A stretch of 63,675 nt of DNA, filler included, from Salisapilia sapeloensis CBS 127946 (GCA_023334545.1; 5 parts of 5 records of this genome joined end to end with filler, not necessarily neighbours in it), one strand, 5' to 3'; counted from the whole stretch's first letter, positions 1,036 to 19,667 are shown. Notes: generated by a model from the letters alone, not told the origin. Made by a program: numbers and translations.

Positions 1036-3795
1036 ATGGTGGTGCACGGTGAGGAACCAATGTCGTCACCTGAAGCACCGGCAGCTCGGTCGAAAGATGC
1101 TTCTGGTGGCATAAAAGTTCCGGAAGGCGAGGTACATATCGAAACGGACAACGGTGGAGTAGACAGCGAGGAGGGAGAGTCTGAAGATGATGAAGACGAG
1201 GGAGATCCGGATCAAACGATCATGAACATGGGTCGGCATGACCGCATGCAGCGTATTCAAAAGGTCTTGTACGACCAACTCGTCGGTAATGATGAACGTC
1301 TGACGATGGAGCTTCGTGAACGAGAGGAAGAGGTGCGACGGATGAAGCAGAGACGGGAGGATGTGGGCGTCCAGCTCTATGGTGTGCAGCAGCAGTTAGC
1401 ACAGCTTCAAGTAGCTCTGGAAGGCTCTCATCGGAAGCTCACGACGTATCATAACGATCGCTTTGCTGCAGAAGACCTGCTCGATGAGCATAAAGAGCAA
1501 GTGGCGGAACGGAAGGCGTTGGTGGGAAAGCATCGAGCGACGCTGTACAAGACACAGACGGAACTGGACACTCTGAACGCAACGCTGCGGCAGGTTGAAA
1601 AGTATAGTGAAGAGATGAAGTATGAGATAGCTCGGACGCAACGGGAGGCACAGAAAGCCGAAGAGATGATGACGAATATGGAGAAGAGCAAAGTGAAACA
1701 GGATCTGTACATCGATAGTTTGAATGAACAATTGAAGCGACTGGAAGACCAGATTGGAGTGAGTACTGCTCATTTAAAATCACAGCAATTAGAGACTGCG
1801 GCTGCGGAGGAAACGTTGAGAGAGGCTTCTGCTCAGATGGAAGTCGTGGCTTTCGAGAAGAAACAGCTTTTGCAGCAGTGGAAGAGTGCACTCGTTGGAT
1901 TGCAACAACGGGACCAGGCTCTCCAAGCAACGCAGCAGAGTATTTCAAAGGTGAATGAAGAAGATTTGGCGTTGTCCGTGGAAGTGAAGGGGTATAAGGC
2001 ATCGATTGAAAAGGCTCAGCGAGAGCATGAAACCCTCTTGGGCACGGTTGAACGGTTTAATGCTGAGATCCGCTTCGTTGAGGAACAGATTGGATCTTTA
2101 AAGAAGGAGCAAGAGAGATTGGCGAGTCGATATGAGATGCTGACCAAGTCACTGCGACAGACAGAAGCAGAAGAAAGTAAGGTGAAGGAGGAAGGAAAGA
2201 AGCTGGATGGAGAAAACCAGCAAGTCCAGCAGCAGTTAGAAACAACGCAACGTGATCGGCATGTACTTGAAGACCAGGTTGCTAGCCTGAAGAATGAGCA
2301 AACGACAGCGAACAAGGCTGTACATAATCTAACGAAAGAGACTTTGAAGCTGCAGGGTGTAGTCCATGAGAAAGAGAATGCACTCGCAGAACTACGAAAT
2401 GAAATTGCTCGTGTAAACGTAGACATTCTGAATGTCCAATCACACATTGGTCAGCTGGAGGAGGTACAAGGACGTACGGTTGGCGACTTGCAGAATGAAG
2501 ACCGCCGTGTCGAAAAGGTTCAGTTGGAACTTCGTCAGCGCAATGATGAGATTGAAAAGAAGATGCTGCGGCTAGATCGATTAAATAAAAAGTATGAACA
2601 GCTCATGTCGAAAGTAGAAGACGAGAATACTGGGCCGTTGGAAGCAACAATTAAGAATCAAACGAGAGAGACGGCGGAGGTGCGTCGTCGGAATGCAGAG
2701 CTGCAGAAAGAATGGCTACAGATACAAACGGTGCTTGTGAATCTGTCCATTGAATCTCAGGAAATGGGGGAAAAGAATGGAGAGTTGAAAAGTAAGACTA
2801 GTGTACTCGAGCAGAAGCAATTACGATTGATGAACGATCTTGCCAAGATGACACAGGATGTCAAACAACTTCGAACGGTCATCCAGGCCATGCACACTGA
2901 TACGATCAAGCTAAATGAGTTGATTGCGAAGAATACGACGCGACAAGAAGAGCTCGTGAATATGAACCACGGCATGGAGCTTGAGTTTAAGCAGCAGCTA
3001 AAAGAGTTGGAAGCAGAGGCTATGAATGCAGAGAGACGAGCAACAGAGTTGAAAAACGAGAAACAGGAGCTTCTGGATCAGATTGTCGAAGTGGAACGGC
3101 AAATAATGCTATGGGAGAAGAAGATTTTGCTAGAGAAAGAAACGCAAGCAGCTTTGGATCCAGAAGTTGGTCAAGCAGAAGCTCGAAGTATGGAGAAGGA
3201 GATTCATCGCATGCGATTGAGACTTGAGGCTCTGCAGCGTAGCCAGGAGCAAATGCTCATTGATATGGAGCAAGCTGTGCACAAACGAGATTTGCTTGCG
3301 TTACGCGGGCGAAGCAAGAAGGACGCTGATGTAACGTATGCTGCTGTCACGGCCAAGGCATCGACATTGCAGAATAATCTGCAGAAGATGGAGAGGGATA
3401 CGATGAAGCTTGACAAGACGATCAAGAAAAAGATGATTAGTTGTGAAGACTTGACTTTCCAGTTGGAGAAAGCATCAGCCGAGCTGCACGTTGATGAAGA
3501 GCGGGTTGCCACTCTCCAGAAATCTATCAATGACTCGTTGTACGCCAAGCAGCGATTGATTGATGCAGAGTCACGAAAACTGCGATTGTTGCAACGTCTA
3601 GAGGCAGTGCGCAAGGCCGCTGCAACTAAAGGTGTGGACGAAGACAAGGCGAAAAACAACTATGATCGAGCTCGTTCGTCAGTGCTGGTCATTCAGTCTA
3701 TCATTGACAAACTTAAAAGTCAATATCCGCATCTCTCGGAAGTGCTTTCACGTGTTGCAATGCTAGCGGAGGATCCACCGGTGGAAGCTAGTTAG
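1036..3795 (+). CDS. CCDC40: Coiled-coil domain-containing protein 40 (FAP172), axonemal 96-nm ruler / inner dynein arm and N-DRC assembly factor
   Basis: 919-aa single ORF with acidic N-terminus, then long coiled coil carrying CCDC40-type segments REDVGVQLYGVQQQLAQLQ, KQDLYID, QLLQQWKSALVGLQQRD and MEKEIHRMRLR. Confidence 0.88.
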   Translation: MVVHGEEPMSSPEAPAARSKDASGGIKVPEGEVHIETDNGGVDSEEGESEDDEDEGDPDQTIMNMGRHDRMQRIQKVLYDQLVGNDERLTMELREREEEVRRMKQRREDVGVQLYGVQQQLAQLQVALEGSHRKLTTYHNDRFAAEDLLDEHKEQVAERKALVGKHRATLYKTQTELDTLNATLRQVEKYSEEMKYEIARTQREAQKAEEMMTNMEKSKVKQDLYIDSLNEQLKRLEDQIGVSTAHLKSQQLETAAAEETLREASAQMEVVAFEKKQLLQQWKSALVGLQQRDQALQATQQSISKVNEEDLALSVEVKGYKASIEKAQREHETLLGTVERFNAEIRFVEEQIGSLKKEQERLASRYEMLTKSLRQTEAEESKVKEEGKKLDGENQQVQQQLETTQRDRHVLEDQVASLKNEQTTANKAVHNLTKETLKLQGVVHEKENALAELRNEIARVNVDILNVQSHIGQLEEVQGRTVGDLQNEDRRVEKVQLELRQRNDEIEKKMLRLDRLNKKYEQLMSKVEDENTGPLEATIKNQTRETAEVRRRNAELQKEWLQIQTVLVNLSIESQEMGEKNGELKSKTSVLEQKQLRLMNDLAKMTQDVKQLRTVIQAMHTDTIKLNELIAKNTTRQEELVNMNHGMELEFKQQLKELEAEAMNAERRATELKNEKQELLDQIVEVERQIMLWEKKILLEKETQAALDPEVGQAEARSMEKEIHRMRLRLEALQRSQEQMLIDMEQAVHKRDLLALRGRSKKDADVTYAAVTAKASTLQNNLQKMERDTMKLDKTIKKKMISCEDLTFQLEKASAELHVDEERVATLQKSINDSLYAKQRLIDAESRKLRLLQRLEAVRKAAATKGVDEDKAKNNYDRARSSVLVIQSIIDKLKSQYPHLSEVLSRVAMLAEDPPVEAS

Positions 3796-3841: not shown

Positions 3842-5500
3842 TCATGCTGTATGTGTAACTTGGTTTCGCTTCCCTTTGCTGTATCCTCGAGTAGCTTTAT
3901 CCTTATATTCTGCTTGCTTTTCTTCCGCTTCATGCAAATGCTTCTGAGCGCTATGGATGTCCGCATGAAGCTTTCGAATCCGAGAATCCATTTCCTCAAG
4001 ACGCTCCAAATAGATACGCTTCGCTTCACCCCATATGCGTACTTTGGATTGCTCGCGAACGAAAAAGTACTTGGTTTTATCTGCTTCTGCTAGTTCCTCT
4101 CGAGCTTGTAAAATCTCATGCTGGAGCGTTCGGATCCGACTTGTCCAAAACCCAAGTTTCTGCTTGGACTCGTTGATGTTTTGACAGTGCATGCATGGCC
4201 TTGGTAATGTATGCACTTGACAGCGGTCAACTAATCCTGTCGTATCAATATCGTGTAGATCCAATGGGTGGTTCCATCTACATCGCCCAAGCCGCTCCAT
4301 GCTCTTGCACATGCCCGCTCGCTGGAAGGATGTGCACACGGGCAGCGTATTTTCATTATTGGCGTATTTGGATCGAACATCCACGACTCGTTTATAGAGG
4401 TCTTGGAGAGAGATGTGACTACATGGTGGCTTCAGCGTACACTTTCGACAGCGACGCAATGGTTTGTTCATTTCTAAAATCGATAGAGAAAAAGGAATTG
4501 GATCTGTTTCCTGTATCGGCTTGTCAGATGGGAGAAGTGCCTTTGACACATTTGGTATGCTAATAAACGATTGTGTCTTAAAGACTTTCAATAGAAGCTT
4601 CATCGCAGCTCGCAGATTACCCTTGCATTCTTGGACGATGGCTTCTAGTCCATCTTGTGTGTACCCGATCTATTTGTCCACAGTAAAAATTATGACGAAG
4701 AGAAAGCTAGATTGGACGTACCAGTTCCTGTGTGCAAATGGACAGTAGCTTGCGACGCACGTGGTCGGTCTTTAGTGGTTGGAGATGGACTGATACTGCA
4801 ATTGATTTCATTTGGTCGATGATTTTTGTTGCGTCCGGGTTATCGATGCAGATGAAGAACACTTCATGCCGGTTGGCGTTTAATATGATCGGAAGCACGC
4901 CACGTTGTTGAACACTCACCGGTATGCTAGCGTATATTTCTATCAACATTGCCGATTTGTTCTCTCTATGACGAGCAATACCTTCCAAAGTTTTCTATAA
5001 CGATATAACTTTTCTTCTTGACTGCAATGGCGACTTCGGACGAGTCTTTCAAGATGTTCAAAAGCCGCTTTTCACTATAAGTGTGAGCCTCTTTAGATGC
5101 TAAGGTATGCAATGACTACAAAGGTATAAGTACGATAGTTCGATTGCATCGATCTTCTCGAAAGGAATAACAGAATCCTCAGTGTCTAGAGCAAGGATTT
5201 GCTGCAATAACTGCAGTACAGACGTTTTGCCCGTGAATACATCACCCTATCATTTACGTTTACACGATAGGGATAACTTGAATAATTGTAGTAAATATCA
5301 CGCGAAGTATGTTCATTCGTACTGTGATGATGTAGTTAACGGGTGTAGAGACACTTTCGCTAACGAGTGTCTGCAACATTGTAGTCGTCTTCGGGTTACC
5401 AAGAAGACTATCAATGGTTTGCGGTCTGCATCGATGCTTCCTACAAGCATCCACACAATTACTTAAAGGTATGCAATGAGTGAAGCGTGAGTTGAACCAT
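3842..5500 (-). CDS. Multi-exon RFC (clamp loader small subunit)-like AAA+ protein with degenerate Walker B and arginine finger, plus C-terminal Cys/His zinc-binding motifs and coiled coil; 5' end unresolved
   Basis: Manual splicing with exons 5440-5323, 5246-5134, 5074-4982, 4926-4722 and 4669-3842 (all GT-AG, phases compatible) gives RPQTIDSLLGN...NYIITGDVFTGKTS...SYIVIENFGS...KIIDQMKSIA...IGYTQDGLEAIVQECKGNLRAAMKLL...FISIPNVSKA, collinear with RFC small-subunit motifs as recalled. Confidence 0.72.
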
Positions 5501-5721
5501 GCTTCTAGCGTATCTTCGCTACATGGTAACCGAGGTTTGGATGGAACCACGAAAGATCTGTACTCTGCATCAATGGAGGACCAAAATCCATATCGGACTT
5601 GCCACGGCGTATTGGTGGTTGGTACTGCGCCTTGTAGGTGCATTTACGCTAAATCAGTTTTGCATGCGATTTGTCCGTCCGTTAGCAATTTATGTCTGGA
5701 TACCTTTTCCAACTAAATTAC

Positions 5722-6098
5722 CATGATAGCAAAGCTAGTGATATTGGATTGTTTGCTGATTATAGTGGTATGGGCAGTAAGGTTAATCTTACGACAACTA
5801 GTTTACTACGCAATCTTGTGGCCTTGTCGTACATGATGTAGCTGAGTAAATGCTATCCTAAAAATCTTTGTGAGGGTATAGCTATAACTACATTGTAGCT
5901 TAACGGCATCGCACATGTACAACCTCTCTTCCATTTTAGCTTACCAAGACGGATTCGAAGCTTTCCACTGAACAGCTTACTCTCATTCTCTGCATTCATA
6001 ATCTCTTCTACTTTTCTCGCGAAACTTTCTACCTTTGTTACACTCGCACATGGACGAGCTTCCTCTACTTTTTTGTTGTCGTATTTTCTATAGTTCAT
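5722..6098 (-). CDS. Possible upstream exons of the RFC-like gene, or a separate small gene; weak PH-like pattern
   Basis: ORF 5853-6098 contains LFSGKLRIRLGKLKWKR; short open segments and splice-like sites follow, but no consistent splice path was found. Confidence 0.25.
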
Positions 6099-6871
6099 CC
6101 TTCTGCAACTCTGCTCTCATAATCGCTACTCATTCCACTCATACAACCTAGTCTTCATCATGTACACGCGTGCGGAAATCAGGTGCATGGACATTCTCGT
6201 TTCTACTTTCGCTTTAGAGTTAAACTTTCTCTATTCGGCCCATCGAGTACCAGATACAAGACCAAGAAGTAGACAAACCTCATCTACAGTCAGACTCTAT
6301 TTTAACACACATCGTAGCTTTTTAAACTTTTCGTCCTCTACAAAGGCTCTTGGTTACAGAGAGTTTGTATCCTCCTCGTGCTATTGGAAGATGAGGAGCA
6401 CCAAGAAAATATTCTGGTGGTGGTACATGCCACAGTGCAGCTGATGTAATATATCTTGGTGAGGTGGAATCTGGATACGAGTGACGTCAGACAGTGATCT
6501 TCACCTGCATATCCACGAGATCAATCCAGACGACTACCATACGCTTATTTCTTAGCACAATAGAAATAGAGCAGAAGGTGATAAACACAAACCCTCCTCA
6601 GACATAACATCGTTTCGAATTCTATAGCCTTTCAGACTACGTTCAATTTGTTAAACAAAATCGATTTTTAATCCATCCGGATCCGCGTGCCACCAAGATA
6701 AGCTTTACATAGCACATAAACACTGGTCTAGAGAATCGAGTGGTGACGATGCACTCGTAGGCATGACGCAATCCGCTCCACTTCAAGTTGTGTCCTCGTC
6801 GATTCCGAGACATTCCAGTATACTACTGTCTTCCAATCAACTCATTTAACAAGTTATCAAGAGAGAAAGGG

Positions 6872-7895
6872 ATGGCACTGGCGGCGACGTTGCTTCGATG
6901 CATGCCTCGCAAGGCGATGGCAACGCAGACCACTCGGTCGCTCAACTACCTGGCGAACCCGAGTTCGCTCGAACGGTTGTTTGAGAATAACAAAAAGTGG
7001 CGAGAGGGCAAAAAGCTCTTGGACCCAGACTACTTTGACAAGACTTCACAAGGCCAGCATCCGCAGTACTTGTGGATCGGATGCTCTGACTCGCGTGTCC
7101 CGGCCGAAGAGATCACGGGTCTCACGCCTGGTGAAGTCTTTGTGCACCGAAATGTAGCGAATCTGGTCCCGGCGAATGACATCAGCAGTCTCTCGGTCGT
7201 CCAGTACGCTGTCGAGCACCTTAAAGTCAAGGACATTATCATCTGTGGGCACTATGGCTGCGGTGGTGTGAAAGCTGCCGTCGAGAACAAACACCTTGGT
7301 CTTTTAGACAATTGGCTTCGCAATATCCGAGATGGTATGATGACAAAGTAGAGGATAGACTCGAAGTACCTGTCTAACGTTTATGTATCTAGTGGTGCGC
7401 ATTCACTTTGACGAGTTGGAACAGATTGAGACGGATGAAGAGCGTCTTAACCGTATCGTCGAGCTCAATACGATCGAGCAGTGCATCAACGTATTTAAGA
7501 TCGGTTTCGTCCAGAGACATCAAGTGCGATATGGTTTTCCACGTATCCACGGTCTCGTCTACGGCCTGAATGACGGCGAGCTCCAGGAATTGGATATCGA
7601 CTTTGACTCGTACATCAGTCGTTACCGGTCCATCTACCGCCTGCACTCGTTCCCGGACGAAGTCCCTCAGCGTCGATCGCAGCTCCAAGCCAACGCCATC
7701 CGTACGCTCGTGACAGATTTGGATGAGGAAGACGGCAAAGTGCGTGTGAAGCTTCTAAAGCGTGCGATGACGAAAGAGCCGTTGCTCTTTAGTGACACAG
7801 AGATTGACCGTGCCATTTCTGCTGTCCAGGAAGATGATTCAGAGAAGAGCATGGTCAACGTTGAGGACCTCATCTCGTACTTCATGCAGCACTAG
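6872..7895 (+). CDS. Beta-class carbonic anhydrase with probable mitochondrial presequence and C-terminal EF-hand-like extension
   Basis: Zn ligand motifs GCSDSRVP (CxDxR) and GHYGCGG (HxxC), plus [11 protein letters not shown]. Intron 7335-7392 (GTATGA...TAG) joins the two ORFs in frame (RD-VVRIH). ATG at 6872 opens an Arg/Ala-rich leader with no acidic residues. Confidence 0.93.
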
Positions 7896-7998
7896 TGATG
7901 TCTGTCTTGTAGCAGCAATGAATACACATGTGATTTGATTCTTTTTACTTGTTCTTACGTTCACGAACGGAGTTTAAAGTACTTGTACAAAGATATTA

Positions 7999-9821
7999 AT
8001 GGAGGCGAAGAAACGAGTGGCTGTGGAGAACGTGGAGGGAGGTATGTCTATCATGCTCTTGTCCGTCGGAGGGAGCTGGTCTAAAGGCCTCTAGGTCGAC
8101 GGAAGAAAGCCAAGGTCGTGATCGACTGTACTGGAGAAGCGCCCGAGCCGCTCTTCCATCTCACGAAACTCAAAGATGCTCCAGCTTCTCATAACGGTTC
8201 ATAATGTCATTAGAATTATTCTCAAAGCATGCTTGAGCTATAGTGCTTGTAGAAGGTGCAGTGGGGCTGGCAGACTTGCTGGAAGGAGAGTTTTCGAGCT
8301 GCCTCTTGACGAATTACATGTACGACATGGACTGGCTGTTGGGTAAATGTCCTCGACTGCGCAGTGTTCCTGTCGTTCTAGTACATGGTGATCGCGATCC
8401 GAAAGCGTGTGTTGTTATTATTCAGCCTACGATGCATACTTGAGATCCTAAGACTTGCCTAGCCTAGTTGACTGCTGTCTTCCATTCAAGAATATTCAGG
8501 TCGTAACTCCTTCCCTTCCGATCCCTTATGGCACACATCACACCAAGATGATGGTACGACCTAGGTGTTATACCAAGCTATTCGAGTACATAGTTTCATG
8601 AAGGTCGTATTGCAGGTCATCAAGTACGAGACAAAAGTACGCGTTGCTATCTTCACGGCCAATTTTATCTCTTCAGATTGGGAGAAGAAGACACAAGGAG
8701 TGTGGTATCAAGACTTTGGATTGAAAAGTGGAGGTACAAAGTCAAAGGATGAAAAGACTTGGCCGGACTTTGAATCCGATCTCGTGAACTACTTGATGAC
8801 ACTTGGTCATCCAGCCAAGTCTTTCTGTCAAGACTTGTCGGCATTCGATTTCTCGACTGCTCAAGCTGTATTGATCCCTTCCGTACCAGGGTATCATAAA
8901 GGAAAAGGTATGCCTCGAGCTCGTGCTACTTTCATCATCATCCCTCTTATGCTTAAATTGAATAGACATGAAGAAATATGGCCACTATCGCGTCCGAGAG
9001 TAAGTCTAATACTTTCTCTTTCCTGTACTTAAAACCGAACAAAACTGTACGATAGAGTGCTGCAGAAGCTCAATGTACCCAAGACGGACCATCCTCTCAT
9101 TGCTCAATTCTCAAGCCTTGGTTCGATCGATGAAAAGTGGCTTTATGGTGAGTTCACGGATAGTTTGATCCCAACGGCGACAGCTCGTCCGAAAGGAAAC
9201 CCACTTCCAATCTCTGCGCTTCATCTTATCTGGCCTTCTGTCGATGATGTCGTACGCTTCTTTCTTTTCTGACTTTAAAGTGTTGATTCACTAGTCTCAC
9301 GGATGCTTTGATAGCGTAACTCGTTGGAAGGATGGCGGGCAGGTGGGTCATTACCTTGTACGCTCAAGAACATGAAGCCGTTTCTTCACAAGTATCTTCG
9401 AAAGTGGTCTCCTCCAGAATGCTTGCATCGACAGCGGGCGATGCCACACATTAAGACGTACGCGCGATATGACATGGACCCGGACAAGAGAGGCGCAGTG
9501 GACTGGGCAATTCTCACAAGTGCCAATATGAGCAAGGCGGCGTGGGGAGCGCTTCAAAAGAATGGATCACAACTTATGATTCGCTCGTATGAGCTAGGCG
9601 TGCTCTTCCTTCCGCAGCTCACTACCCAGAATGAGACGAGCTTGACAGTTGTCGGCAGTACCCGGGAGGGCAAGTTGGTAGGTGATGGGCAGCTTGTTAC
9701 ACGATTACCGCTGCCTTACTCCTTTCCCTTACACGGCTATGACCCGCGGTCTGATGAGCCGTGGGTATGGGATCTACCTCGTGATGACCCGGATATCTTT
9801 GGTATGCAATATAGTCCGTAG
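7999..9821 (+). CDS. TDP1: Tyrosyl-DNA phosphodiesterase 1, multi-exon
   Basis: Two catalytic HxK motifs (GTHHTKMM and MPHIKTY), plus LTNYMYDMDWL, IFTANF, QGVW, QFSSLGS, TSANMSKAAWG, IRSYELGVLF and EPWVWD. Exon boundaries only partly traced. Confidence 0.92.
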
Positions 9822-11083: not shown

Positions 11084-12606
11084 TTACGACTCTTCTTCCT
11101 CTTCTTCTGAGTCACTAGATGCTTCGGACGAGCTATCACTATCTTCCTCCACCTCTCCTTTCACTTTCTTCTCCATTTCTTCTAGCGCCCATCCAGTGCT
11201 CTCCTTGGTGAAGCGAGAGATAGCATCTCTCAACTCCTTTGCGACTTGCAGAAAGCGATCTTCTTCCAGACACTGGACCCAGACACAATAGTCTTGGATG
11301 TAAAGTGTGTTTAGCAGATACTGCGTCTCGGACTTTTCAACGATACGATACAAATCTAAGAGTACACGTAGCACCATTCGTTTCCCACGTTCCAAGATGG
11401 CGAGTGTTTCATCCAATACACGTCTGGCCAGATCGAACTGACGTAAGAGAGGGAAGGAGATCATGCGACGGACACCGGATCGAACGACATCATCTAGATT
11501 TGCCGTCGAGTCCAGCCATGAGAGAGTTGGACTGACGATACTAGCTGTCCATGTAGACTCGATGTTACTTTCTCCTTGTGTTGTCAAGTGGTCGTACGTG
11601 TATCCGATGAGGATGTCGACGAGTCCTCCGAGTAGAACAGCTTCTTCTCTACTTCCTTTCTCGATTAAATATTCTTTTCGAGGAAGACGTAGGAGAAGTT
11701 CTTGGTCGTCTTCTGAAAATAAGTCGGTGGACTCTTTGGCGGTGTCTTGTATCTGCAGTGTCTGTAGCTGTTCGCTCAAGCCTTTCGTCCGAACGACGGG
11801 GTATTTCGTCCAAAACGGCGTGTACTCCATGGCCATGGTAAAGTACGGATCTTCATCCTGACCCATGTAATCCATCAAGTAGTGTTCAATGTCGAATTGC
11901 TCTTCTTCCGCCGCCTGACGCAATCTTCGTCGTTCATCCTGATGCAGATTATCTGGATCCGGGTTGGAAACAATCTCGGAAACTGCGCCGTGCCAAGCAC
12001 GGAAGAATTCAGAGTAGGCGTTGTTGAAACCGTAGGACGGTTTCAAGTCCGTCACGTGAATCGAGTCGGTCTTATGGTCTTCATACAGTGTCTGCTTTTG
12101 CTCTAGATTTAGTAGACTGTCATCCGTCTGTGGCTTTGTTGCTGTTTCTTCTGTAAATGTTGATTCCTTGTCTCCATCCTGTGACGTCGGTGAAGAGATG
12201 ACTTCAATGAGCGAACTCTTCGGTTCTGGTGTCGCCAATGGGTTTGGACGTGGTTGGATTAGAAGCTTGGTGAGCATGTCGAGGTCTTCGAAGTGCTGGC
12301 CAGGCATCTCCTTTGGCAAGTGAACTGTGATGGTGCCATTCTCCTACTTGATATGTGAGTCGTGCTAGTCGTAGATAATGTGATGCATGACGATTTTACC
12401 TTGTTCGGGTCATAGACTGCTTTGGCATTGTCGTCATCGACTACGGCGTGAGGGAACTCGAGCTTAAGCAAGTACGGTTTGCAGTAGAACATAAAGTGGG
12501 AGCCATCAACAGTGAACTCCATGTCCGAGACACGGACGTACGGCACGTGCACATGGACGTAGACAAAGTTCTCATCTTGCGAGACGTTAAATCGAGGCGT
12601 GGACAT
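11084..12606 (-). CDS. SHQ1: H/ACA snoRNP assembly chaperone SHQ1
   Basis: N-terminal CS domain MSTPRFNVSQDENFVYVHVHVPYVR...FYCKPYLLKL; in-frame intron 12399-12344; then HFEDLDMLTKLL, YGFNNAYS, ESNIESTWT, LLNTLYIQDYCVW and GWALEEME. Confidence 0.92.
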
Positions 12607-13138
12607 TTTGAAAATGCTTCTAGACCAGTAAGGAGCAGCCAATGAACGGAGGATGCATATCAGATGCAACCAATGAACCGTCTGACAATGGCGGGAAACG
12701 TGCGACCCCATTGGCGATATTAGCAGCATGCTCGTGCGTGTGTGACCTGGCTTTACGCGTCTGTTTTCTATCCACTGTGGGGAGAGAATAAGCAGCGACT
12801 GATAAGCGGAAGAAAACGGTGCCAGTTACACTGCCATCTTCTGCGAAAGCACAGCGTGGGCTCACAACGATGGGATCTTTCCCTTGAGCGCCACTTTCGC
12901 ATATTTCTTCATATCTTTATGTCCGGGATCCAGCACAATCCTTGAAGCTACGCAGAAGAAGCGACCACAGATCACGCTTCGACTTTGTATCTTCAGCAGT
13001 CACCCGACTGTCTTTTTCTTGCAATTCTCGAAAGAAGTTCGAGCTGTAACGGTTGCTAGAACACAACTCGTTCGATTCCTATCTGTTCATTTTTCAATCC
13101 GACCTCGAGCACTCAAGCGCAACTTTTCTCTACGTATT

Positions 13139-13981
13139 ATGGACCCGATCACCGTCAAACTTTCCTGCGGACAAGAAGTTCATCGTCTCTCGGTCTCGAG
13201 CGATGAACTGAACATGAACTGGTTTGTCCGCCAAGTCAATGACCTCTTCAACCCGGGTTCCGCACGCCTGAACTCGTGGGTACTCTTGTACACGGACGAT
13301 GAAGGCGAAGAAATCACGGTCAGCATGGAGCACGAGATCGAGGAAGCGTGCCGCGTCCAGTACCGGATGAACGAAAATTCGAATGCGCCGCTCCGATTCC
13401 GCGTCGGGACGCCCCGTCCCACTTGGTCGGCCAGTCAGTTCAGCATGGAACCACTGATTCACGCGATGCAAGAGCTTTCTGCACGCGTCTCTCGCCTTGC
13501 AGAGAACACTCGGGACAGCTTCCGTTCCAGCGTTTATGTGGAACGTGGCCGTGAGTCACTTGCTGCTTCGTCTGTCCAAACTCGTCGCGCATTTACGAAC
13601 GCAGGTGCGCGTCTTCGTCAAGCGAGCTCTGTCGTTGCAGGTGAGATCTCGGGCCTCCGTCGTCGCACACGCAATGGATCTCGGGACGGCTCAGTGGATG
13701 AAAAGGAGTCGTTCTTGGGCGACAAGAGTGGTGCGACGGAATCAGAGGATGAGACGTGGGAAAAGCTGGGTGCTGCACCTGCCCATGCGGAATCCAAACC
13801 GGCTGAGACTGTCGAAGCCAAAGACCAGGTTGAAGAAGACACTGCGAGCGATGATTTGAACGTCCAGATTGGCACGATCCGCGCCATTGCCCCGGATGTC
13901 GAAGTCGCTCGTTGCCGTGAACTTCTTGAAAAGCACAATGGCAATGTGGAAGCCGTCCTTGTCGAATTGACGGACAAGTAA
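13139..13981 (+). CDS. PB1-LIR-UBA protein, p62/SQSTM1-NBR1-like selective autophagy receptor candidate (280 aa)
   Basis: PB1 with beta1 Lys (VKLSCG) and acidic OPCA motif YTDDEGEEITV; LIR-like ESEDETWEKL; C-terminal UBA/CUE-like CRELLEKHNGNVEAVLVEL. Start taken at ATG 13139, not the TTG at 12884. Confidence 0.78.
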   Translation: MDPITVKLSCGQEVHRLSVSSDELNMNWFVRQVNDLFNPGSARLNSWVLLYTDDEGEEITVSMEHEIEEACRVQYRMNENSNAPLRFRVGTPRPTWSASQFSMEPLIHAMQELSARVSRLAENTRDSFRSSVYVERGRESLAASSVQTRRAFTNAGARLRQASSVVAGEISGLRRRTRNGSRDGSVDEKESFLGDKSGATESEDETWEKLGAAPAHAESKPAETVEAKDQVEEDTASDDLNVQIGTIRAIAPDVEVARCRELLEKHNGNVEAVLVELTDK

Positions 13982-15094: not shown

Positions 15095-18072
15095 TTAACG
15101 TATAGACGCCTTGGATGTCAAGTTAGACGTCTGCTTTGCGCCCAGCACTGCTTGCTTGGGCACAGACATTGATCCATGTGGAGCTCCATTCCGAGTAGGT
15201 AGTGGAGACACAGCTGGAGAACCAGACATACTTTGAGGTGAGTTCCCACTGACAGCTACATTTTGCTTTGCTGATCCAAGCGCGACATTTCGGCATCTCG
15301 AGGCAAAATTGAGTGAACAGAGTGTCTCCCATGCATTCCATTGTACAGGACTAATGTTCACAAACATAAGCGCTTTTGAGCCTCCACTAAGCGAGTCTTG
15401 AAGCAGGAATGTCAGCTTTGAGTTCCGGTAAGGCACATGCTTACTACCGGACGCAAGTGCAGCAATCACGTCCCCAAGCGCTGAAAGAGACCTGTTGATG
15501 TTCTGGGCTTCTTTCAACCGTTGCCCAGTAGCAGCAGTCTTCCCCACTCTTTCCGATCCTGCTAAATCAATCAGGTGGAGCTTTGACGAACGAATACGAC
15601 CGTCGTTGGAACTCTTTGTCTCAATTTTGATGGAAACGACAAGATGCGAACGACTGGAGTGCTCATTTACATCGTGAGCACCGACACTGCGGTGCGAGTG
15701 ACCGAGTTTCATCAAATGTACGACGTCATCTTGGCAGTGGACATCCATCTCGGACAAATTCTCAGCGTAGACCCCTGCTTTACCTAAACGCAATTCCAGA
15801 CCAACTTTAGCACCTGTCTTGGTAGGTGATCCGTACGCAGACATATCCTGCAGTAGGTCCACAATCGTTTCGTTATATACTTCTAGAATACTTAGTTTCA
15901 TAGAGCATTCAAAGTTCCCTGATGTGGCACGTTCATCTCGAATAGCAAACAGCTCTTGCAGAGCGCGATAGTTCACACCTCGATCTGTTGCTGTTCCTTC
16001 CATCGTATGCGTCTTACCACTACCTGTTTGTCCGTACGCGAATATACAGACGCTACAAGGATCCGTGAGAATGAGTAACTGCAAGAGATTTTACAGACTA
16101 AGTAAAGCGTACTTGTATCCGTCTAAAGCACTGACGACTAGCTGACGTGTTTGCTCAAAGACATCCGATTGAGAGCTTTCTGGCTGGAACACATGATCGA
16201 ACTCGAACGTGTGCTTTTGACCAGTTCCTTTGTCCGTATCACCATTCACAAGTAACTCCAGACTTTGCATGTCTTCACCTGGAAAGAAGACAGCAGTACT
16301 GTCCTGGTTGCTAGCTTTCTCCGGTGGTTGTATTGGACGCACACGGCAGAAGACTCGAATATTGCCTTGTAGCTCCATCAGACGGTTGTGTAGTTTTCGT
16401 CGACTGTCGACTTCCTTCGAATAGAGCTCAGACAATCTTGCTGTCTCCGCTTTGGCCTTTGCTATCTCCTTCGCAGCCTATGGATACACATTAGTGGCAG
16501 AGCACGTACAACTTTACCTGTGGAAACTTGGATAGCACGTACCTCTTGTTGAGCAAGAGCTCTTCCTTCTTCCTTCGCACGGACAATAAGCTGCTCTTGC
16601 TTACTTATAGTCTCATTCATTTTCTTGAGCTCTTCTTTGCTCTGAAGAACCTCGTGCTCCAATTGTTCCACTCGTTCCGTAATCGCTTTCTTCTCCTTCT
16701 CTCGATTTCGTAGTTCCTGCGCTAGAGCCTGTCCACGAGTCTTCATGTCTGTCAGTTGAACTGTCATTGCTTCTTTCTGCTTTGTAGCGGCTTCTTCCAC
16801 TTCGTTCTTTTCAGCTTTGATTTGGTCTAGTGCCTTCTTCATTTCCAAAACTCGCTGCTTTTCCTGTTCTAGTCCAGCCGTTTGGGCACTTTGCGTCTCG
16901 TTTTTATAGTCGTCCAAACTCTGCTTTGCTTCCCTTAACTCTTGTTGGTAGCTATCCAACTTTTGTTGTAAATTTCCATTCGCCTCTTTCTCTTCCATGA
17001 GCTTTTTGTCTTTGCTCGCAAGTTCGTCTTGTAGTTCTTTTACCTGGGACTCGTTGCTTGTTTGATCGGCTGTAGAATGCTTTAAGTCCGCTCGTAATGT
17101 CTGAATTTGTTGCTGGGAAGCGCGGAGGTCGTTAATCAGCTTGTCTCGTTGGACCTTCATGGCGTCCAACTCAATCGACGACGACGCGAATCCTTCCTTA
17201 GATTCGGCTTTGTTTTCGTCTGCATCCGTTCGAGCTTCCAATTCATTTCGAGCTCGAATAAGTGCCTTCTTCATCTTTTTATTTGCCTCGCGACCGTCAT
17301 TTTCTTTCTTCAACGCATCCGTGAGCTGCTCCGACAATGACCTCAAGTCTTCTTCCATTTGTTCTTTTTCATCTCGAAGGCTGTCAATAGTAGCTTTCTC
17401 TTTTCCTAGCTGTGCTTTTAAAGTTTCCACTTCCTCTGTAAGCTCTTGTACAACTGCATCATGATTGTCTTGTTCTTTCGGTTCCTGGATATGCCCAGCT
17501 TGTGTCATAGATGAGCTTGCCCACGTTACTCGACGATGGTTTTGACTCGATGGAAACGATGATACATCATGAGCATTACTTTCCAACTTCTTACGTCGTA
17601 GGTTTTGGAATAACTGTCGAAATTGGTCATCCGAAGGATGTTCCCATCGACTCTCACCGGTAACCTCGTTATAGTAGTATGGCTGCTCAGTTTCATCTTC
17701 CGCAATATGGTACCATCCGTCCGGAAGCGGTGCTACGAGAGACTCGCGAGCAATCCACAGGTACTCAGCATCATTAATAGGGTCGATGCCTAACCGAAGT
17801 GCGTGCTCTTCGACGCCAGCCTGAAACAGCTCAGGGTCCGCTGCTTCCATGCGAGCAGACTCCTCTCCAGAGGCTAAAGGTACCTGAAGGTCGTACTCTT
17901 CAAAGTTATCGTATTGTTCAAAATATTCAAAACCGAGTGAATTCGTAGCTGCTTTCGCTTCCTGATCATAGGATGCAGTATCTGGAGATACCACGGAAGC
18001 CTTCACTTCCTCCTCTTCATCCGAATCACTTCCTTCGAATGCCAAACTCAATAGATTATTGCTCTCCGCCAT
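15095..18072 (-). CDS. Kinesin-14 (C-terminal motor) with N-terminal CEP164-type WW module and coiled-coil stalk (950 aa, 3 exons)
   Basis: Exons 18072-16543, 16477-16113 and 16052-15095 splice in frame (total 2853 nt). Kinesin-14 neck RRKLHNRLMELQGNIRVFCRVRP, P-loop GQTGSGKT, switch motifs SSRSH and DLAGSE, and HVPYRNSKLTFLL. Confidence 0.9.
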
Positions 18073-18260: not shown

Positions 18261-19667
18261 ATGGTGTCTTTGCATACCATCATATATGCCTGCTTGGCGA
18301 TACTATCGACATGGCCTGTCCAAGGTGCCAGTATTCATGTAAAGATTCATGAGAGTCCTCACAAGGCGAAGGAGTCCGTGGAGTCTAAGCACCTCTACCA
18401 CATCAAAGGAGACAAGAGGGACATAGGAAATCTCTTGGCAAAGAAGACGAACGGTGTAGATGTATGGAATGTACAGGCACAAGACGATATGGCGGTGGTA
18501 GATGTCCACGCGACGAAGAAAGATGCAGAGAACCTTGTCCACTCTGTGCCAAGCCATGCCCACCACCATGCAAAGGGATATTCTCATGGACGTAAACATA
18601 AGCATGTGAAGCTATGGGAGGATGAAATGGATGAGGAAGAAGAGATCGCTCGAGACAGGAGAGAGGTAAAGGCATGTCTTGATGACCACGGAGAAGACTT
18701 TGTGGACGAGGTGCAGACCGAGGACTATAACTACACCGCCTCGTCCTACTTTGAATGTTTCCGTCCTTATGACCAGACCTATCATTTCTTCGATACGCTC
18801 GCAGAAGCGAATCCAGACCTCATGACAAAAGAGCCGAACATTTCCACGACATACGAAGGCAGGCCGATCCATGCCTATCGAATCAGCATTTCGACCGAAA
18901 AGAAGAAGTCTCTTTACATCCAAGCGCTAATTCATCCTCGCGAGTGGCAAGCAGGTGCATCTACGGCATTTGCAACTGCTTCACTAGTAATGAACTGGAA
19001 GCATGGGGAACAAGACGCTGTCAAGGCACTAGAGGAGTTTGACTGGTACATCGTTCCGATCGTCAATGTCGACGGATACATTTACTCGTGGGAAAAGGAT
19101 CGACTATGGCGTACGAACAGAGACATGGAAGGCACGTTAAATTCCGGAGAGCATGTCGGTGTGGATCTGAATCGGAATTTCGGCCCGGATGAATTTTATG
19201 AGGAGAATATTAAGCATGCCGACGATGAGACGTACCCTGGTGAGCATCCTCTGAGCGAACCTTCCTCTGAAGGCATTATGGAATACCTTCGAGATGTACA
19301 TGAGCTCAGTGGAGTGATTGATATGCATAGCTTTGGTGGAGAAGTACTTCGTCCTTTTAGTGATCAAAGTGACGGGATGGACAAAGCGCATGAATCGAAA
19401 TTAAAGCATCTAGGAGATGCTGTTGCTAACGTCATGGGTTATGAGAGCAAGACAGGTGCAGACCTTTATCTTGCTTATGGGTGCTTTGACGATGGCGTAT
19501 CACATGAGTTTAACTTGACCGTTCCAGCGGTGACATTCGAGGTAGAAGGAGACTTTTTCACTGCGAAACAAAGCACGATCCGAGATGTCGGTGGAAACGT
19601 GTATCAAGGTTGGTTGCAGTTTGCAAAAGAAGCTTTGGACTATAAGAAGTTCATCGATAGCTTGTAG
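18261..19667 (+). CDS. Secreted M14 zinc metallocarboxypeptidase (prepro form)
   Basis: Signal peptide; Zn motif HPREW (HxxE), DLNRNF, DMHSFG and catalytic-Glu region AVTFEV. Confidence 0.9.
   Translation: MVSLHTIIYACLAILSTWPVQGASIHVKIHESPHKAKESVESKHLYHIKGDKRDIGNLLAKKTNGVDVWNVQAQDDMAVVDVHATKKDAENLVHSVPSHAHHHAKGYSHGRKHKHVKLWEDEMDEEEEIARDRREVKACLDDHGEDFVDEVQTEDYNYTASSYFECFRPYDQTYHFFDTLAEANPDLMTKEPNISTTYEGRPIHAYRISISTEKKKSLYIQALIHPREWQAGASTAFATASLVMNWKHGEQDAVKALEEFDWYIVPIVNVDGYIYSWEKDRLWRTNRDMEGTLNSGEHVGVDLNRNFGPDEFYEENIKHADDETYPGEHPLSEPSSEGIMEYLRDVHELSGVIDMHSFGGEVLRPFSDQSDGMDKAHESKLKHLGDAVANVMGYESKTGADLYLAYGCFDDGVSHEFNLTVPAVTFEVEGDFFTAKQSTIRDVGGNVYQGWLQFAKEALDYKKFIDSL

Follow-up and report, generated by a model that had tools for sequence, protein, structure and literature searches.

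An intact six-exon gene of Salisapilia sapeloensis from a stramenopile family that probably combines an RFC2-type AAA+ core with a zinc module

Known relatives of the RFC small subunits work—to our knowledge—within pentamers, held by a collar, whose task is the loading or unloading of sliding clamps. What, then, is the product of a gene that seems to keep the AAA+ core of such a subunit, with altered catalytic motifs, and that has a Cys/His-rich tail where the collar would be expected? This question is raised by a locus in a 63,675-nucleotide stretch of DNA (filler included) from Salisapilia sapeloensis CBS 127946, referred to here as the window, for which an initial annotation made from the sequence alone had proposed a repurposed clamp-loader paralogue. 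Here we define the gene and compare its product with its relatives and with solved and predicted structures. The identity that emerges, structural as well as evolutionary, is with high probability that of an intact six-exon gene from a stramenopile family whose members combine an RFC2-type AAA+ core with a zinc module.

The RFC2-like gene occupies 5643–3842 on the minus strand and has six exons, five introns and a product of 500 amino acids (aa). Joining the six pieces by script yields a 1,503-nt frame of 500 residues in which the only stop codon is the terminal one. The introns are 52–76 nt in length and all five have GT–AG boundaries. Reading on into four of the five meets an in-frame stop within 4–20 codons, so splicing of this gene is required; the 57-nt intron 0 (5497–5441) has no in-frame stop and thus owes its support entirely to homology. 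The initial annotation had spliced five exons within 3842–5500; splicing and those five exons stand, but the gene has six exons and starts at 5643, exon 0 (5643–5498) having been missed.

Exon 0 (5498–5643) translates into an N-terminal extension (MHLQ...PWQVRYGFW...SKPRLP...TLEA) that begins with the first start codon past an upstream stop and ends with the TG of a Trp codon. It bears W..YGF...KPRLP, an N-terminal motif that is conserved in the family, and aligns with oomycete orthologues. Excision of intron 0 (5441–5497) restores the W-x5-P spacing found in all relatives, and in a genomic contig from one relative (L002) a stop immediately follows the equivalent Trp. Exon A (5323–5440) encodes the RFC box II-like region, (W)KHRCRPQTIDSLLGN ... 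NYIIT, which includes RPQTIDSLLGN and is matched to WVEKYRPVKLNEIVG of human RFC2 in the family profile alignment. After intron 1 (5247–5322, 76 nt), exon B (5134–5246) starts with the Walker A motif GDVFTGKT and has a weak match to Pfam AAA_24; exon C (4982–5074), which follows intron 2 (5075–5133, 59 nt), starts with the third base of a split Ser codon and ends in a degenerate Walker B motif (YIVIENFG). Intron 3 (4927–4981, 55 nt) leads to exon D (4722–4926), with the box VI glutamines (VQQ), the sensor-1 strand (VFFICIDN) and KSIA (within KSIAVSV) at the SRC position. Beyond intron 4 (4670–4721, 52 nt), exon E (4669–3842, with the stop codon at 3844–3842) comprises the AAA+ lid, or domain II (4535–4669), with GNLR and a retained sensor-2 Arg; the zinc module (4190–4498), which reads RC-x2-C-x5-C-x-H, then C-x8-C-x8-C-x3-H, then C-x2-H-x5-C-x2-C; and a long heptad-rich coiled-coil tail, modelled as an antiparallel helical hairpin (3845–4189; helices at exon-E residues 160–208 and 215–261), with a basic RGYSKGK tail. 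Every motif that had been quoted for this locus, from RPQTIDSLLGN, GDVFTGKT, YIVIENFG and KSIAVSV to the lid and the Cys/His motifs, is present in these translations.

Introns 0 and 2 share an identical 14-mer, TCATTGCATACCTT (5466–5479 and 5102–5115, minus strand), followed by similar bases. Around 0.19 chance matches are expected in the window at ≤2 mismatches; three were found, a number reached in none of 100 shuffles. The 14-mer may have been left by an intron duplication, or it may serve both introns as a splicing signal.

The remaining genes of the window form an ordinary compact eukaryotic neighbourhood, and they too are split by short introns. The RFC-like gene is convergent with a plus-strand gene for a 919-aa coiled-coil protein (1036–3795; BRE1-like coiled-coil match), and the two stop codons are 46 bp apart, so the 3′ untranslated regions of both genes probably overlap. 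On its other side, a spacer of around 1.2 kb (5644–6868), which is long given how compact the region is, separates it from a divergent beta-carbonic-anhydrase gene (6869–7351, perhaps continuing at 7383–7895) and contains no open reading frame (ORF) of more than 94 aa. An 81-aa ORF in this spacer (5853–6098) crosses a GTAAGC donor-like site (approximately 5942–5937) but matches none of the acceptors in the RFC-like gene. An alternative upstream exon at about 5853–6098 that would use this donor was rejected: its phase suits no plausible acceptor, and the start at 5643 reproduces the N terminus of the relatives. Further along lie genes for a tyrosyl-DNA phosphodiesterase in at least two pieces (8565–9032 and 9324–9821), SHQ1 (11084–12319, with a likely upstream exon at 12259–12729) and a PB1-domain protein (12884–13981), as well as an ORF that looks like an M14-like carboxypeptidase (18261–19667). 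Three consecutive minus-strand ORFs at 15095–18072—a C-terminal kinesin motor (15095–16084), a short piece (16091–16435) and a long coiled coil with a WW domain (16462–18072)—look like one gene, which would encode a motor of the kinesin-14 type bearing a WW domain at its N terminus.

Comparison with relatives favours the joining of the AAA+ exons to the exon at 4669–3842 in the window gene. The spliced window protein is collinear with oomycete proteins, and local alignment shows no indel at any of the five junctions. Single blastp high-scoring segment pairs (HSPs) span window residues 14–491 in Phytophthora infestans PInf_019804 (6e-118) and Pythium oligandrum (6e-115). L002, a high-GC contig of 21 kb, carries the orthologue at 5800–8419, with breaks at the positions of introns 0–3 and none at the D/E junction: a single unbroken tblastn HSP covers window residues 157–491, which indicates that the coding sequence of this relative runs on without interruption from the last AAA+ exon into the counterpart of 4669–3842, and the upstream pieces shift frame or meet stops where the window has introns 0–3. 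The positions of introns 1 and 3 are common to both. Intron 4 is absent from L002, so it was either gained in the lineage of the window or lost in that of the relative. In the transcriptome-derived, full-length member from Heterosigma akashiwo, the AAA+ and zinc parts lie within one ORF, and in a Tribonema transcript a Pfam AAA match lies upstream of the zinc module, again in one ORF. Whether these exons are joined had been set in advance as a test of the proposal, and the blastp HSPs, L002 and the Heterosigma ORF argue that they are.

The window gene is a member of a sizeable, uncharacterised stramenopile family and not a unique oddity. An exhaustive protein search with exon E returned 108 relatives, 18 of them at E < 1e-30; many are 450–630 aa in length, with the match beginning near residue 240–290. 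A word-index search with an alignment added only P. infestans and bacterial DnaX. In every named case the origin is stramenopile, either oomycete (Lagenidium, Pythium, Globisporangium, Phytophthora, Aphanomyces and Saprolegnia) or algal (the raphidophyte Heterosigma, the xanthophyte Tribonema, and the chrysophytes Ochromonas danica and Ochromonadaceae CCMP2298); the remaining members are metagenome or run-assembly proteins. The marks of the family are found in the window protein in collinear order: W..KPRLP, RFC domains I and II, RC-x2-C-TL-PPC-x-H, the CCCH motif and RC-x2-(C/H)-TLP-PC-x-HC. A maximum-likelihood tree places it within the peronosporalean oomycete clade with good support, as sister to the Pythium–Phytophthora group and on a terminal branch (1.13) that is the longest among the oomycete-clade rows. 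Members are mostly named hypothetical in the databases; some are called C3H1-type domain-containing (two orthologues in UniProt) or AAA+ ATPase domain-containing, and one record gives an orthologue the automatic name ‘subunit of heteropentameric RF-C’. A full-text literature search, including the locus tags of orthologues, found no paper describing the family. The statement that no protein with such an architecture had been described thus holds for the literature searched, but not for the databases, which contain more than 100 homologues, some of them automatically named.

From what did this family arise? Searched singly against Pfam and the PDB, the window exons gave weak matches (AAA_24, E = 0.024; RCF1/5-like lid, E = 0.005), and phmmer aligned exon-E residues 2–44 to human RFC2 212–254 at E = 0.05, so the RFC assignment depends on a chain that leads from the window to the family and from the family to RFC2. 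The profile of the family, built from 30 full-length members and scored against solved structures, gave matches that span box II to the lid. The best was to human RFC2 (E = 1.6e-43), followed by yeast Rfc4 (8e-41), the archaeal RFC small subunit RFCS (about 1e-32), human RFC5 (4e-29), human RFC4 (6e-27), human RFC3 (1e-18), DnaX (3e-14), RFC1 (3e-10) and RarA (5e-8). Structure comparison gave related results. The Lagenidium orthologue was modelled with AlphaFold (pLDDT 86), and RFC small-subunit chains were the top structural matches of the model, with a TM score of 0.83 and an rmsd of 3.3 Å to RFC domains 1–2 (2chg_A); a search of the ESM Atlas with this orthologue returned RFC2 and other small subunits. 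The AlphaFold model of window exon E has a pLDDT of 91.8, and Foldseek placed its 43 N-terminal residues, the lid, on the chain at the B position of RFC (RFC2/Rfc4) at 0.6–0.8 Å with 35–42% identity. The likeness of the lid (YTQDGLEAIVQECKGNLRAAMKLL...FISIPNVSKA) to RFC2, which the initial annotation had pointed out, is therefore real in both the phmmer alignment to residues 212–254 and the Foldseek superposition.

An RFC-type AAA+ domain I and a lid domain II are present, as judged by the profile, the orthologue model and the superposition of the window lid. Together with the motif states below, the profile and the models uphold the view of a repurposed, RFC2-like small-subunit paralogue. The evidence points to an RFC2/Rfc4-type small subunit as the source of the family, although its closeness to RFC2 in particular is judged from the ranking of E values.

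We counted the columns of the catalytic motifs over 37 full-length members. The G, G and K of Walker A are invariant (37/37; GDVFTGKT in the window), and the acid of Walker B is D in 24 members and E in 11 (E in the window). At the position of the catalytic Glu, by contrast, Asn predominates (N 22, G 5, D 4, H 2 and others; N in the window, IVIENFG) and no member has Glu (0/37), so loss of the hydrolytic Glu is a property of the whole family and not decay of the window gene, as an account of degenerate catalysis in this gene alone would have had it. The final acid of the D/E-N-F-D/E box is missing from the window protein as well. The SRC arginine-finger position is variable (K 15, R 9, S 6 and others) and reads I in the window (KSIA). 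In the lid, the sensor-2 position is S in 17 members and G in 8, with others, and is R in the window, where GNLR aligns to GDMR of RFC2 and the sensor-2 Arg is present; among the other members, R is not listed for this column. The residues of box II and of the P-loop are kept. These exon translations and counts agree with what had been read from the window, namely a retained P-loop with the catalytic Glu of Walker B and the SRC arginine missing. A further part of that reading, the replacement of the collar by a Cys/His-rich tail and a coiled coil, also survives: the Rep_fac_C collar (domain III) had no match in the window exons or in 30 relatives, and after the lid the exon-E model shows the zinc module and hairpin where RFC has its collar.

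In the exon-E model, the lid is followed by a short linker, the module (approximately residues 58–160, pLDDT >86) and two long antiparallel helices (160–208 and 215–261). An alignment of 42 modules shows eleven invariant Cys/His ligand positions (C17, C20, C26 and H28; C55, C64, C73 and H77; C93, C102 and C105), plus a few invariant Arg, Leu and Pro residues; at a twelfth position, the algal sequences shown have Cys and the oomycete sequences have His. These twelve ligands would suffice for three zinc sites, which they probably form. The first motif (RC-x2-C-TL-PPC-x-H) is similar to the third (RC-x2-(C/H)-TLP-PC-x-HC), and the middle motif, C-x8-C-x8-C-x3-HP, has a spacing that is atypical for CCCH fingers (canonically C-x7-8-C-x4-5-C-x3-H). 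The profile of the module has weak matches only, the best being to muscleblind CCCH pairs at E = 0.035–0.3, which is not significant. Pfam zf-CCCH was sub-threshold in 8 of 46 relatives (best E = 0.00097) and had no match in the window exons. The middle motif may be a muscleblind-like CCCH finger, the profile match being weak (E = 0.035). The hairpin and a basic RGxSKG tail are common to the oomycete orthologues only; algal members have a different tail.

How might such a protein work? A copy of an RFC2/Rfc4-type small subunit, the probable ancestor, has kept domains I and II, with box II, the P-loop and the lid (in the window protein with its sensor-2 Arg), and has lost the Walker B catalytic Glu (family-wide), the SRC arginine (loosely kept in the family) and the collar. 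The place of the collar is taken by the compact Cys/His module, followed in oomycetes by the long antiparallel helical hairpin. The invariant P-loop, the missing catalytic Glu and the drifting arginine-finger position together suggest that ATP would be bound without useful turnover, serving the AAA+ module as a structural cofactor or slow switch and not as fuel. Binding of single-stranded nucleic acid, with RNA likelier than DNA, would be the simplest reading of a three-zinc module with a muscleblind-like CCCH finger, and the hairpin may dimerise the protein or dock a partner. With the collar missing, there is no known route for the protein into the RFC pentamer, and it would act outside it. 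We put this nucleic-acid-binding switch, proposed from sequence, at close to but not quite an even chance. A bolder form of the same idea is tentative and, on balance, doubtful: that this is the first case, stramenopile-wide, of an RFC small subunit wholly outside the clamp-loader ring, in which a frozen ATP-site switch gates a three-zinc module that binds RNA or single-stranded DNA. If true, it would represent a nucleotide-sensing nucleic-acid regulator made from replication machinery.

The zinc module might instead be a protein-interaction or structural domain, in which case the ATP-bound protein would serve as a scaffold or adaptor, for instance in cytoskeletal or flagellar assembly. We consider this improbable. 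It would account for flanking motifs (C-x2-C-x5-C-x-H) that match no known RNA-binding finger, and it would suit named hosts that are all stramenopiles; however, the central finger does align, weakly, with the RNA-binding fingers of muscleblind. The hairpin bears on this reading in two ways. Its nearest structures are generic coiled-coil hairpins, many of them axonemal, but searches with the exon-E model (Foldseek, VIA-wide and Atlas) were dominated by the hairpin, with generic hairpin matches whose scores fall within the range given for non-specific helical matches, and the hairpin is restricted to the oomycete clade.

The odds are a little longer still for a role in an RFC-like clamp loader, as an alternative subunit or an accessory factor, in which the protein would dock RFC, PCNA or a 9-1-1-type clamp by its AAA+ face or hairpin. 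Ctf18, Elg1 and Rad17 swap into RFC, and some clamp-loader subunits also pair an intact P-loop with a non-catalytic site; in sequence as in fold, the family stands nearest to human RFC2 and yeast Rfc4, the subunits at the B position. Every RFC-type pentamer known to us, however, is held together by the collar domain, which this protein lacks, and the arginine-finger position, which would act on a neighbouring subunit, is not conserved. The record that calls an orthologue an RF-C subunit favours this role, but that name is automatic.

That the gene is a decaying RFC2 duplicate, or a true RFC2 garbled by errors of sequencing or assembly, with a Cys/His-rich tail by chance, is effectively excluded. 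Degenerate catalytic motifs, a branch (1.13) longer than any other among the oomycete-clade rows and weak single-exon Pfam matches might suggest it, but the reading frame runs unbroken through six exons, none of the eleven invariant Cys/His ligands or of the residues of box II and the P-loop has been lost, and intron positions are common to a relative. The same architecture occurs in Heterosigma, Tribonema, Ochromonas and at least seven oomycete genera, so the gene is not a canonical RFC2 with sequencing errors, an outcome that the initial annotation had named among its refutations.

The nucleic-acid-binding switch is the reading that we prefer for a protein that is a clamp-loader-clade AAA+ in a new architecture. 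A collar-less, catalytically silenced RFC2 derivative with a zinc module suggests that the clamp-loader ATPase module has been reused for another job, in hosts that include oomycetes, many of which are pathogens of plants or animals, and ochrophyte algae. This study defines an uncharacterised gene family, possibly with a new zinc-binding domain, and corrects the automatic annotation of its members as hypothetical proteins or RF-C subunits.

Compared with human RFC2 and yeast Rfc4, which occupy the B position of the clamp loader, the window protein has the folds of AAA+ domain I and lid domain II in common, as well as box II, the P-loop GxxxxGKT, the box VI glutamines and the GD/N-x-R lid motif; it is without the Walker B DE (IENFG), the SRC arginine and collar domain III, and adds an N-terminal extension, the triple Cys/His module and the helical hairpin. 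WRNIP1/Mgs1/RarA is likewise a clamp-loader-clade ATPase that acts outside the RFC pentamer and has a zinc finger, and RarA matches the family profile at 5e-8. WRNIP1 combines an N-terminal UBZ finger with an active ATPase and an MgsA_C tetramerisation domain (PMC5384577), whereas the zinc module of the window protein is C-terminal, of another type and found beside degenerate catalytic residues. The zinc-finger pair of muscleblind-like (MBNL) proteins aligns weakly (E = 0.035–0.3) with the central C-x8-C-x8-C-x3-HP finger and the next Cys-rich stretch, but the scores are not significant, the spacing in the window is longer than in canonical CCCH fingers, and MBNL has no counterpart to the two flanking RC-x2-C-TL-PPC-x-H motifs. 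The oomycete orthologues (P. infestans PInf_019804, Pythium oligandrum Poli38472_006395, Lagenidium N0F65_002422, Saprolegnia SDRG_02311 and Aphanomyces Ae201684_000876) are collinear with the window protein over around 480 residues at 33–40% identity, with the same domain order and zinc ligands; in the Pythium, Lagenidium and P. infestans-clade sequences shown, the SRC Arg is kept and the sensor-2 Arg is missing, whereas the window protein has the reverse.
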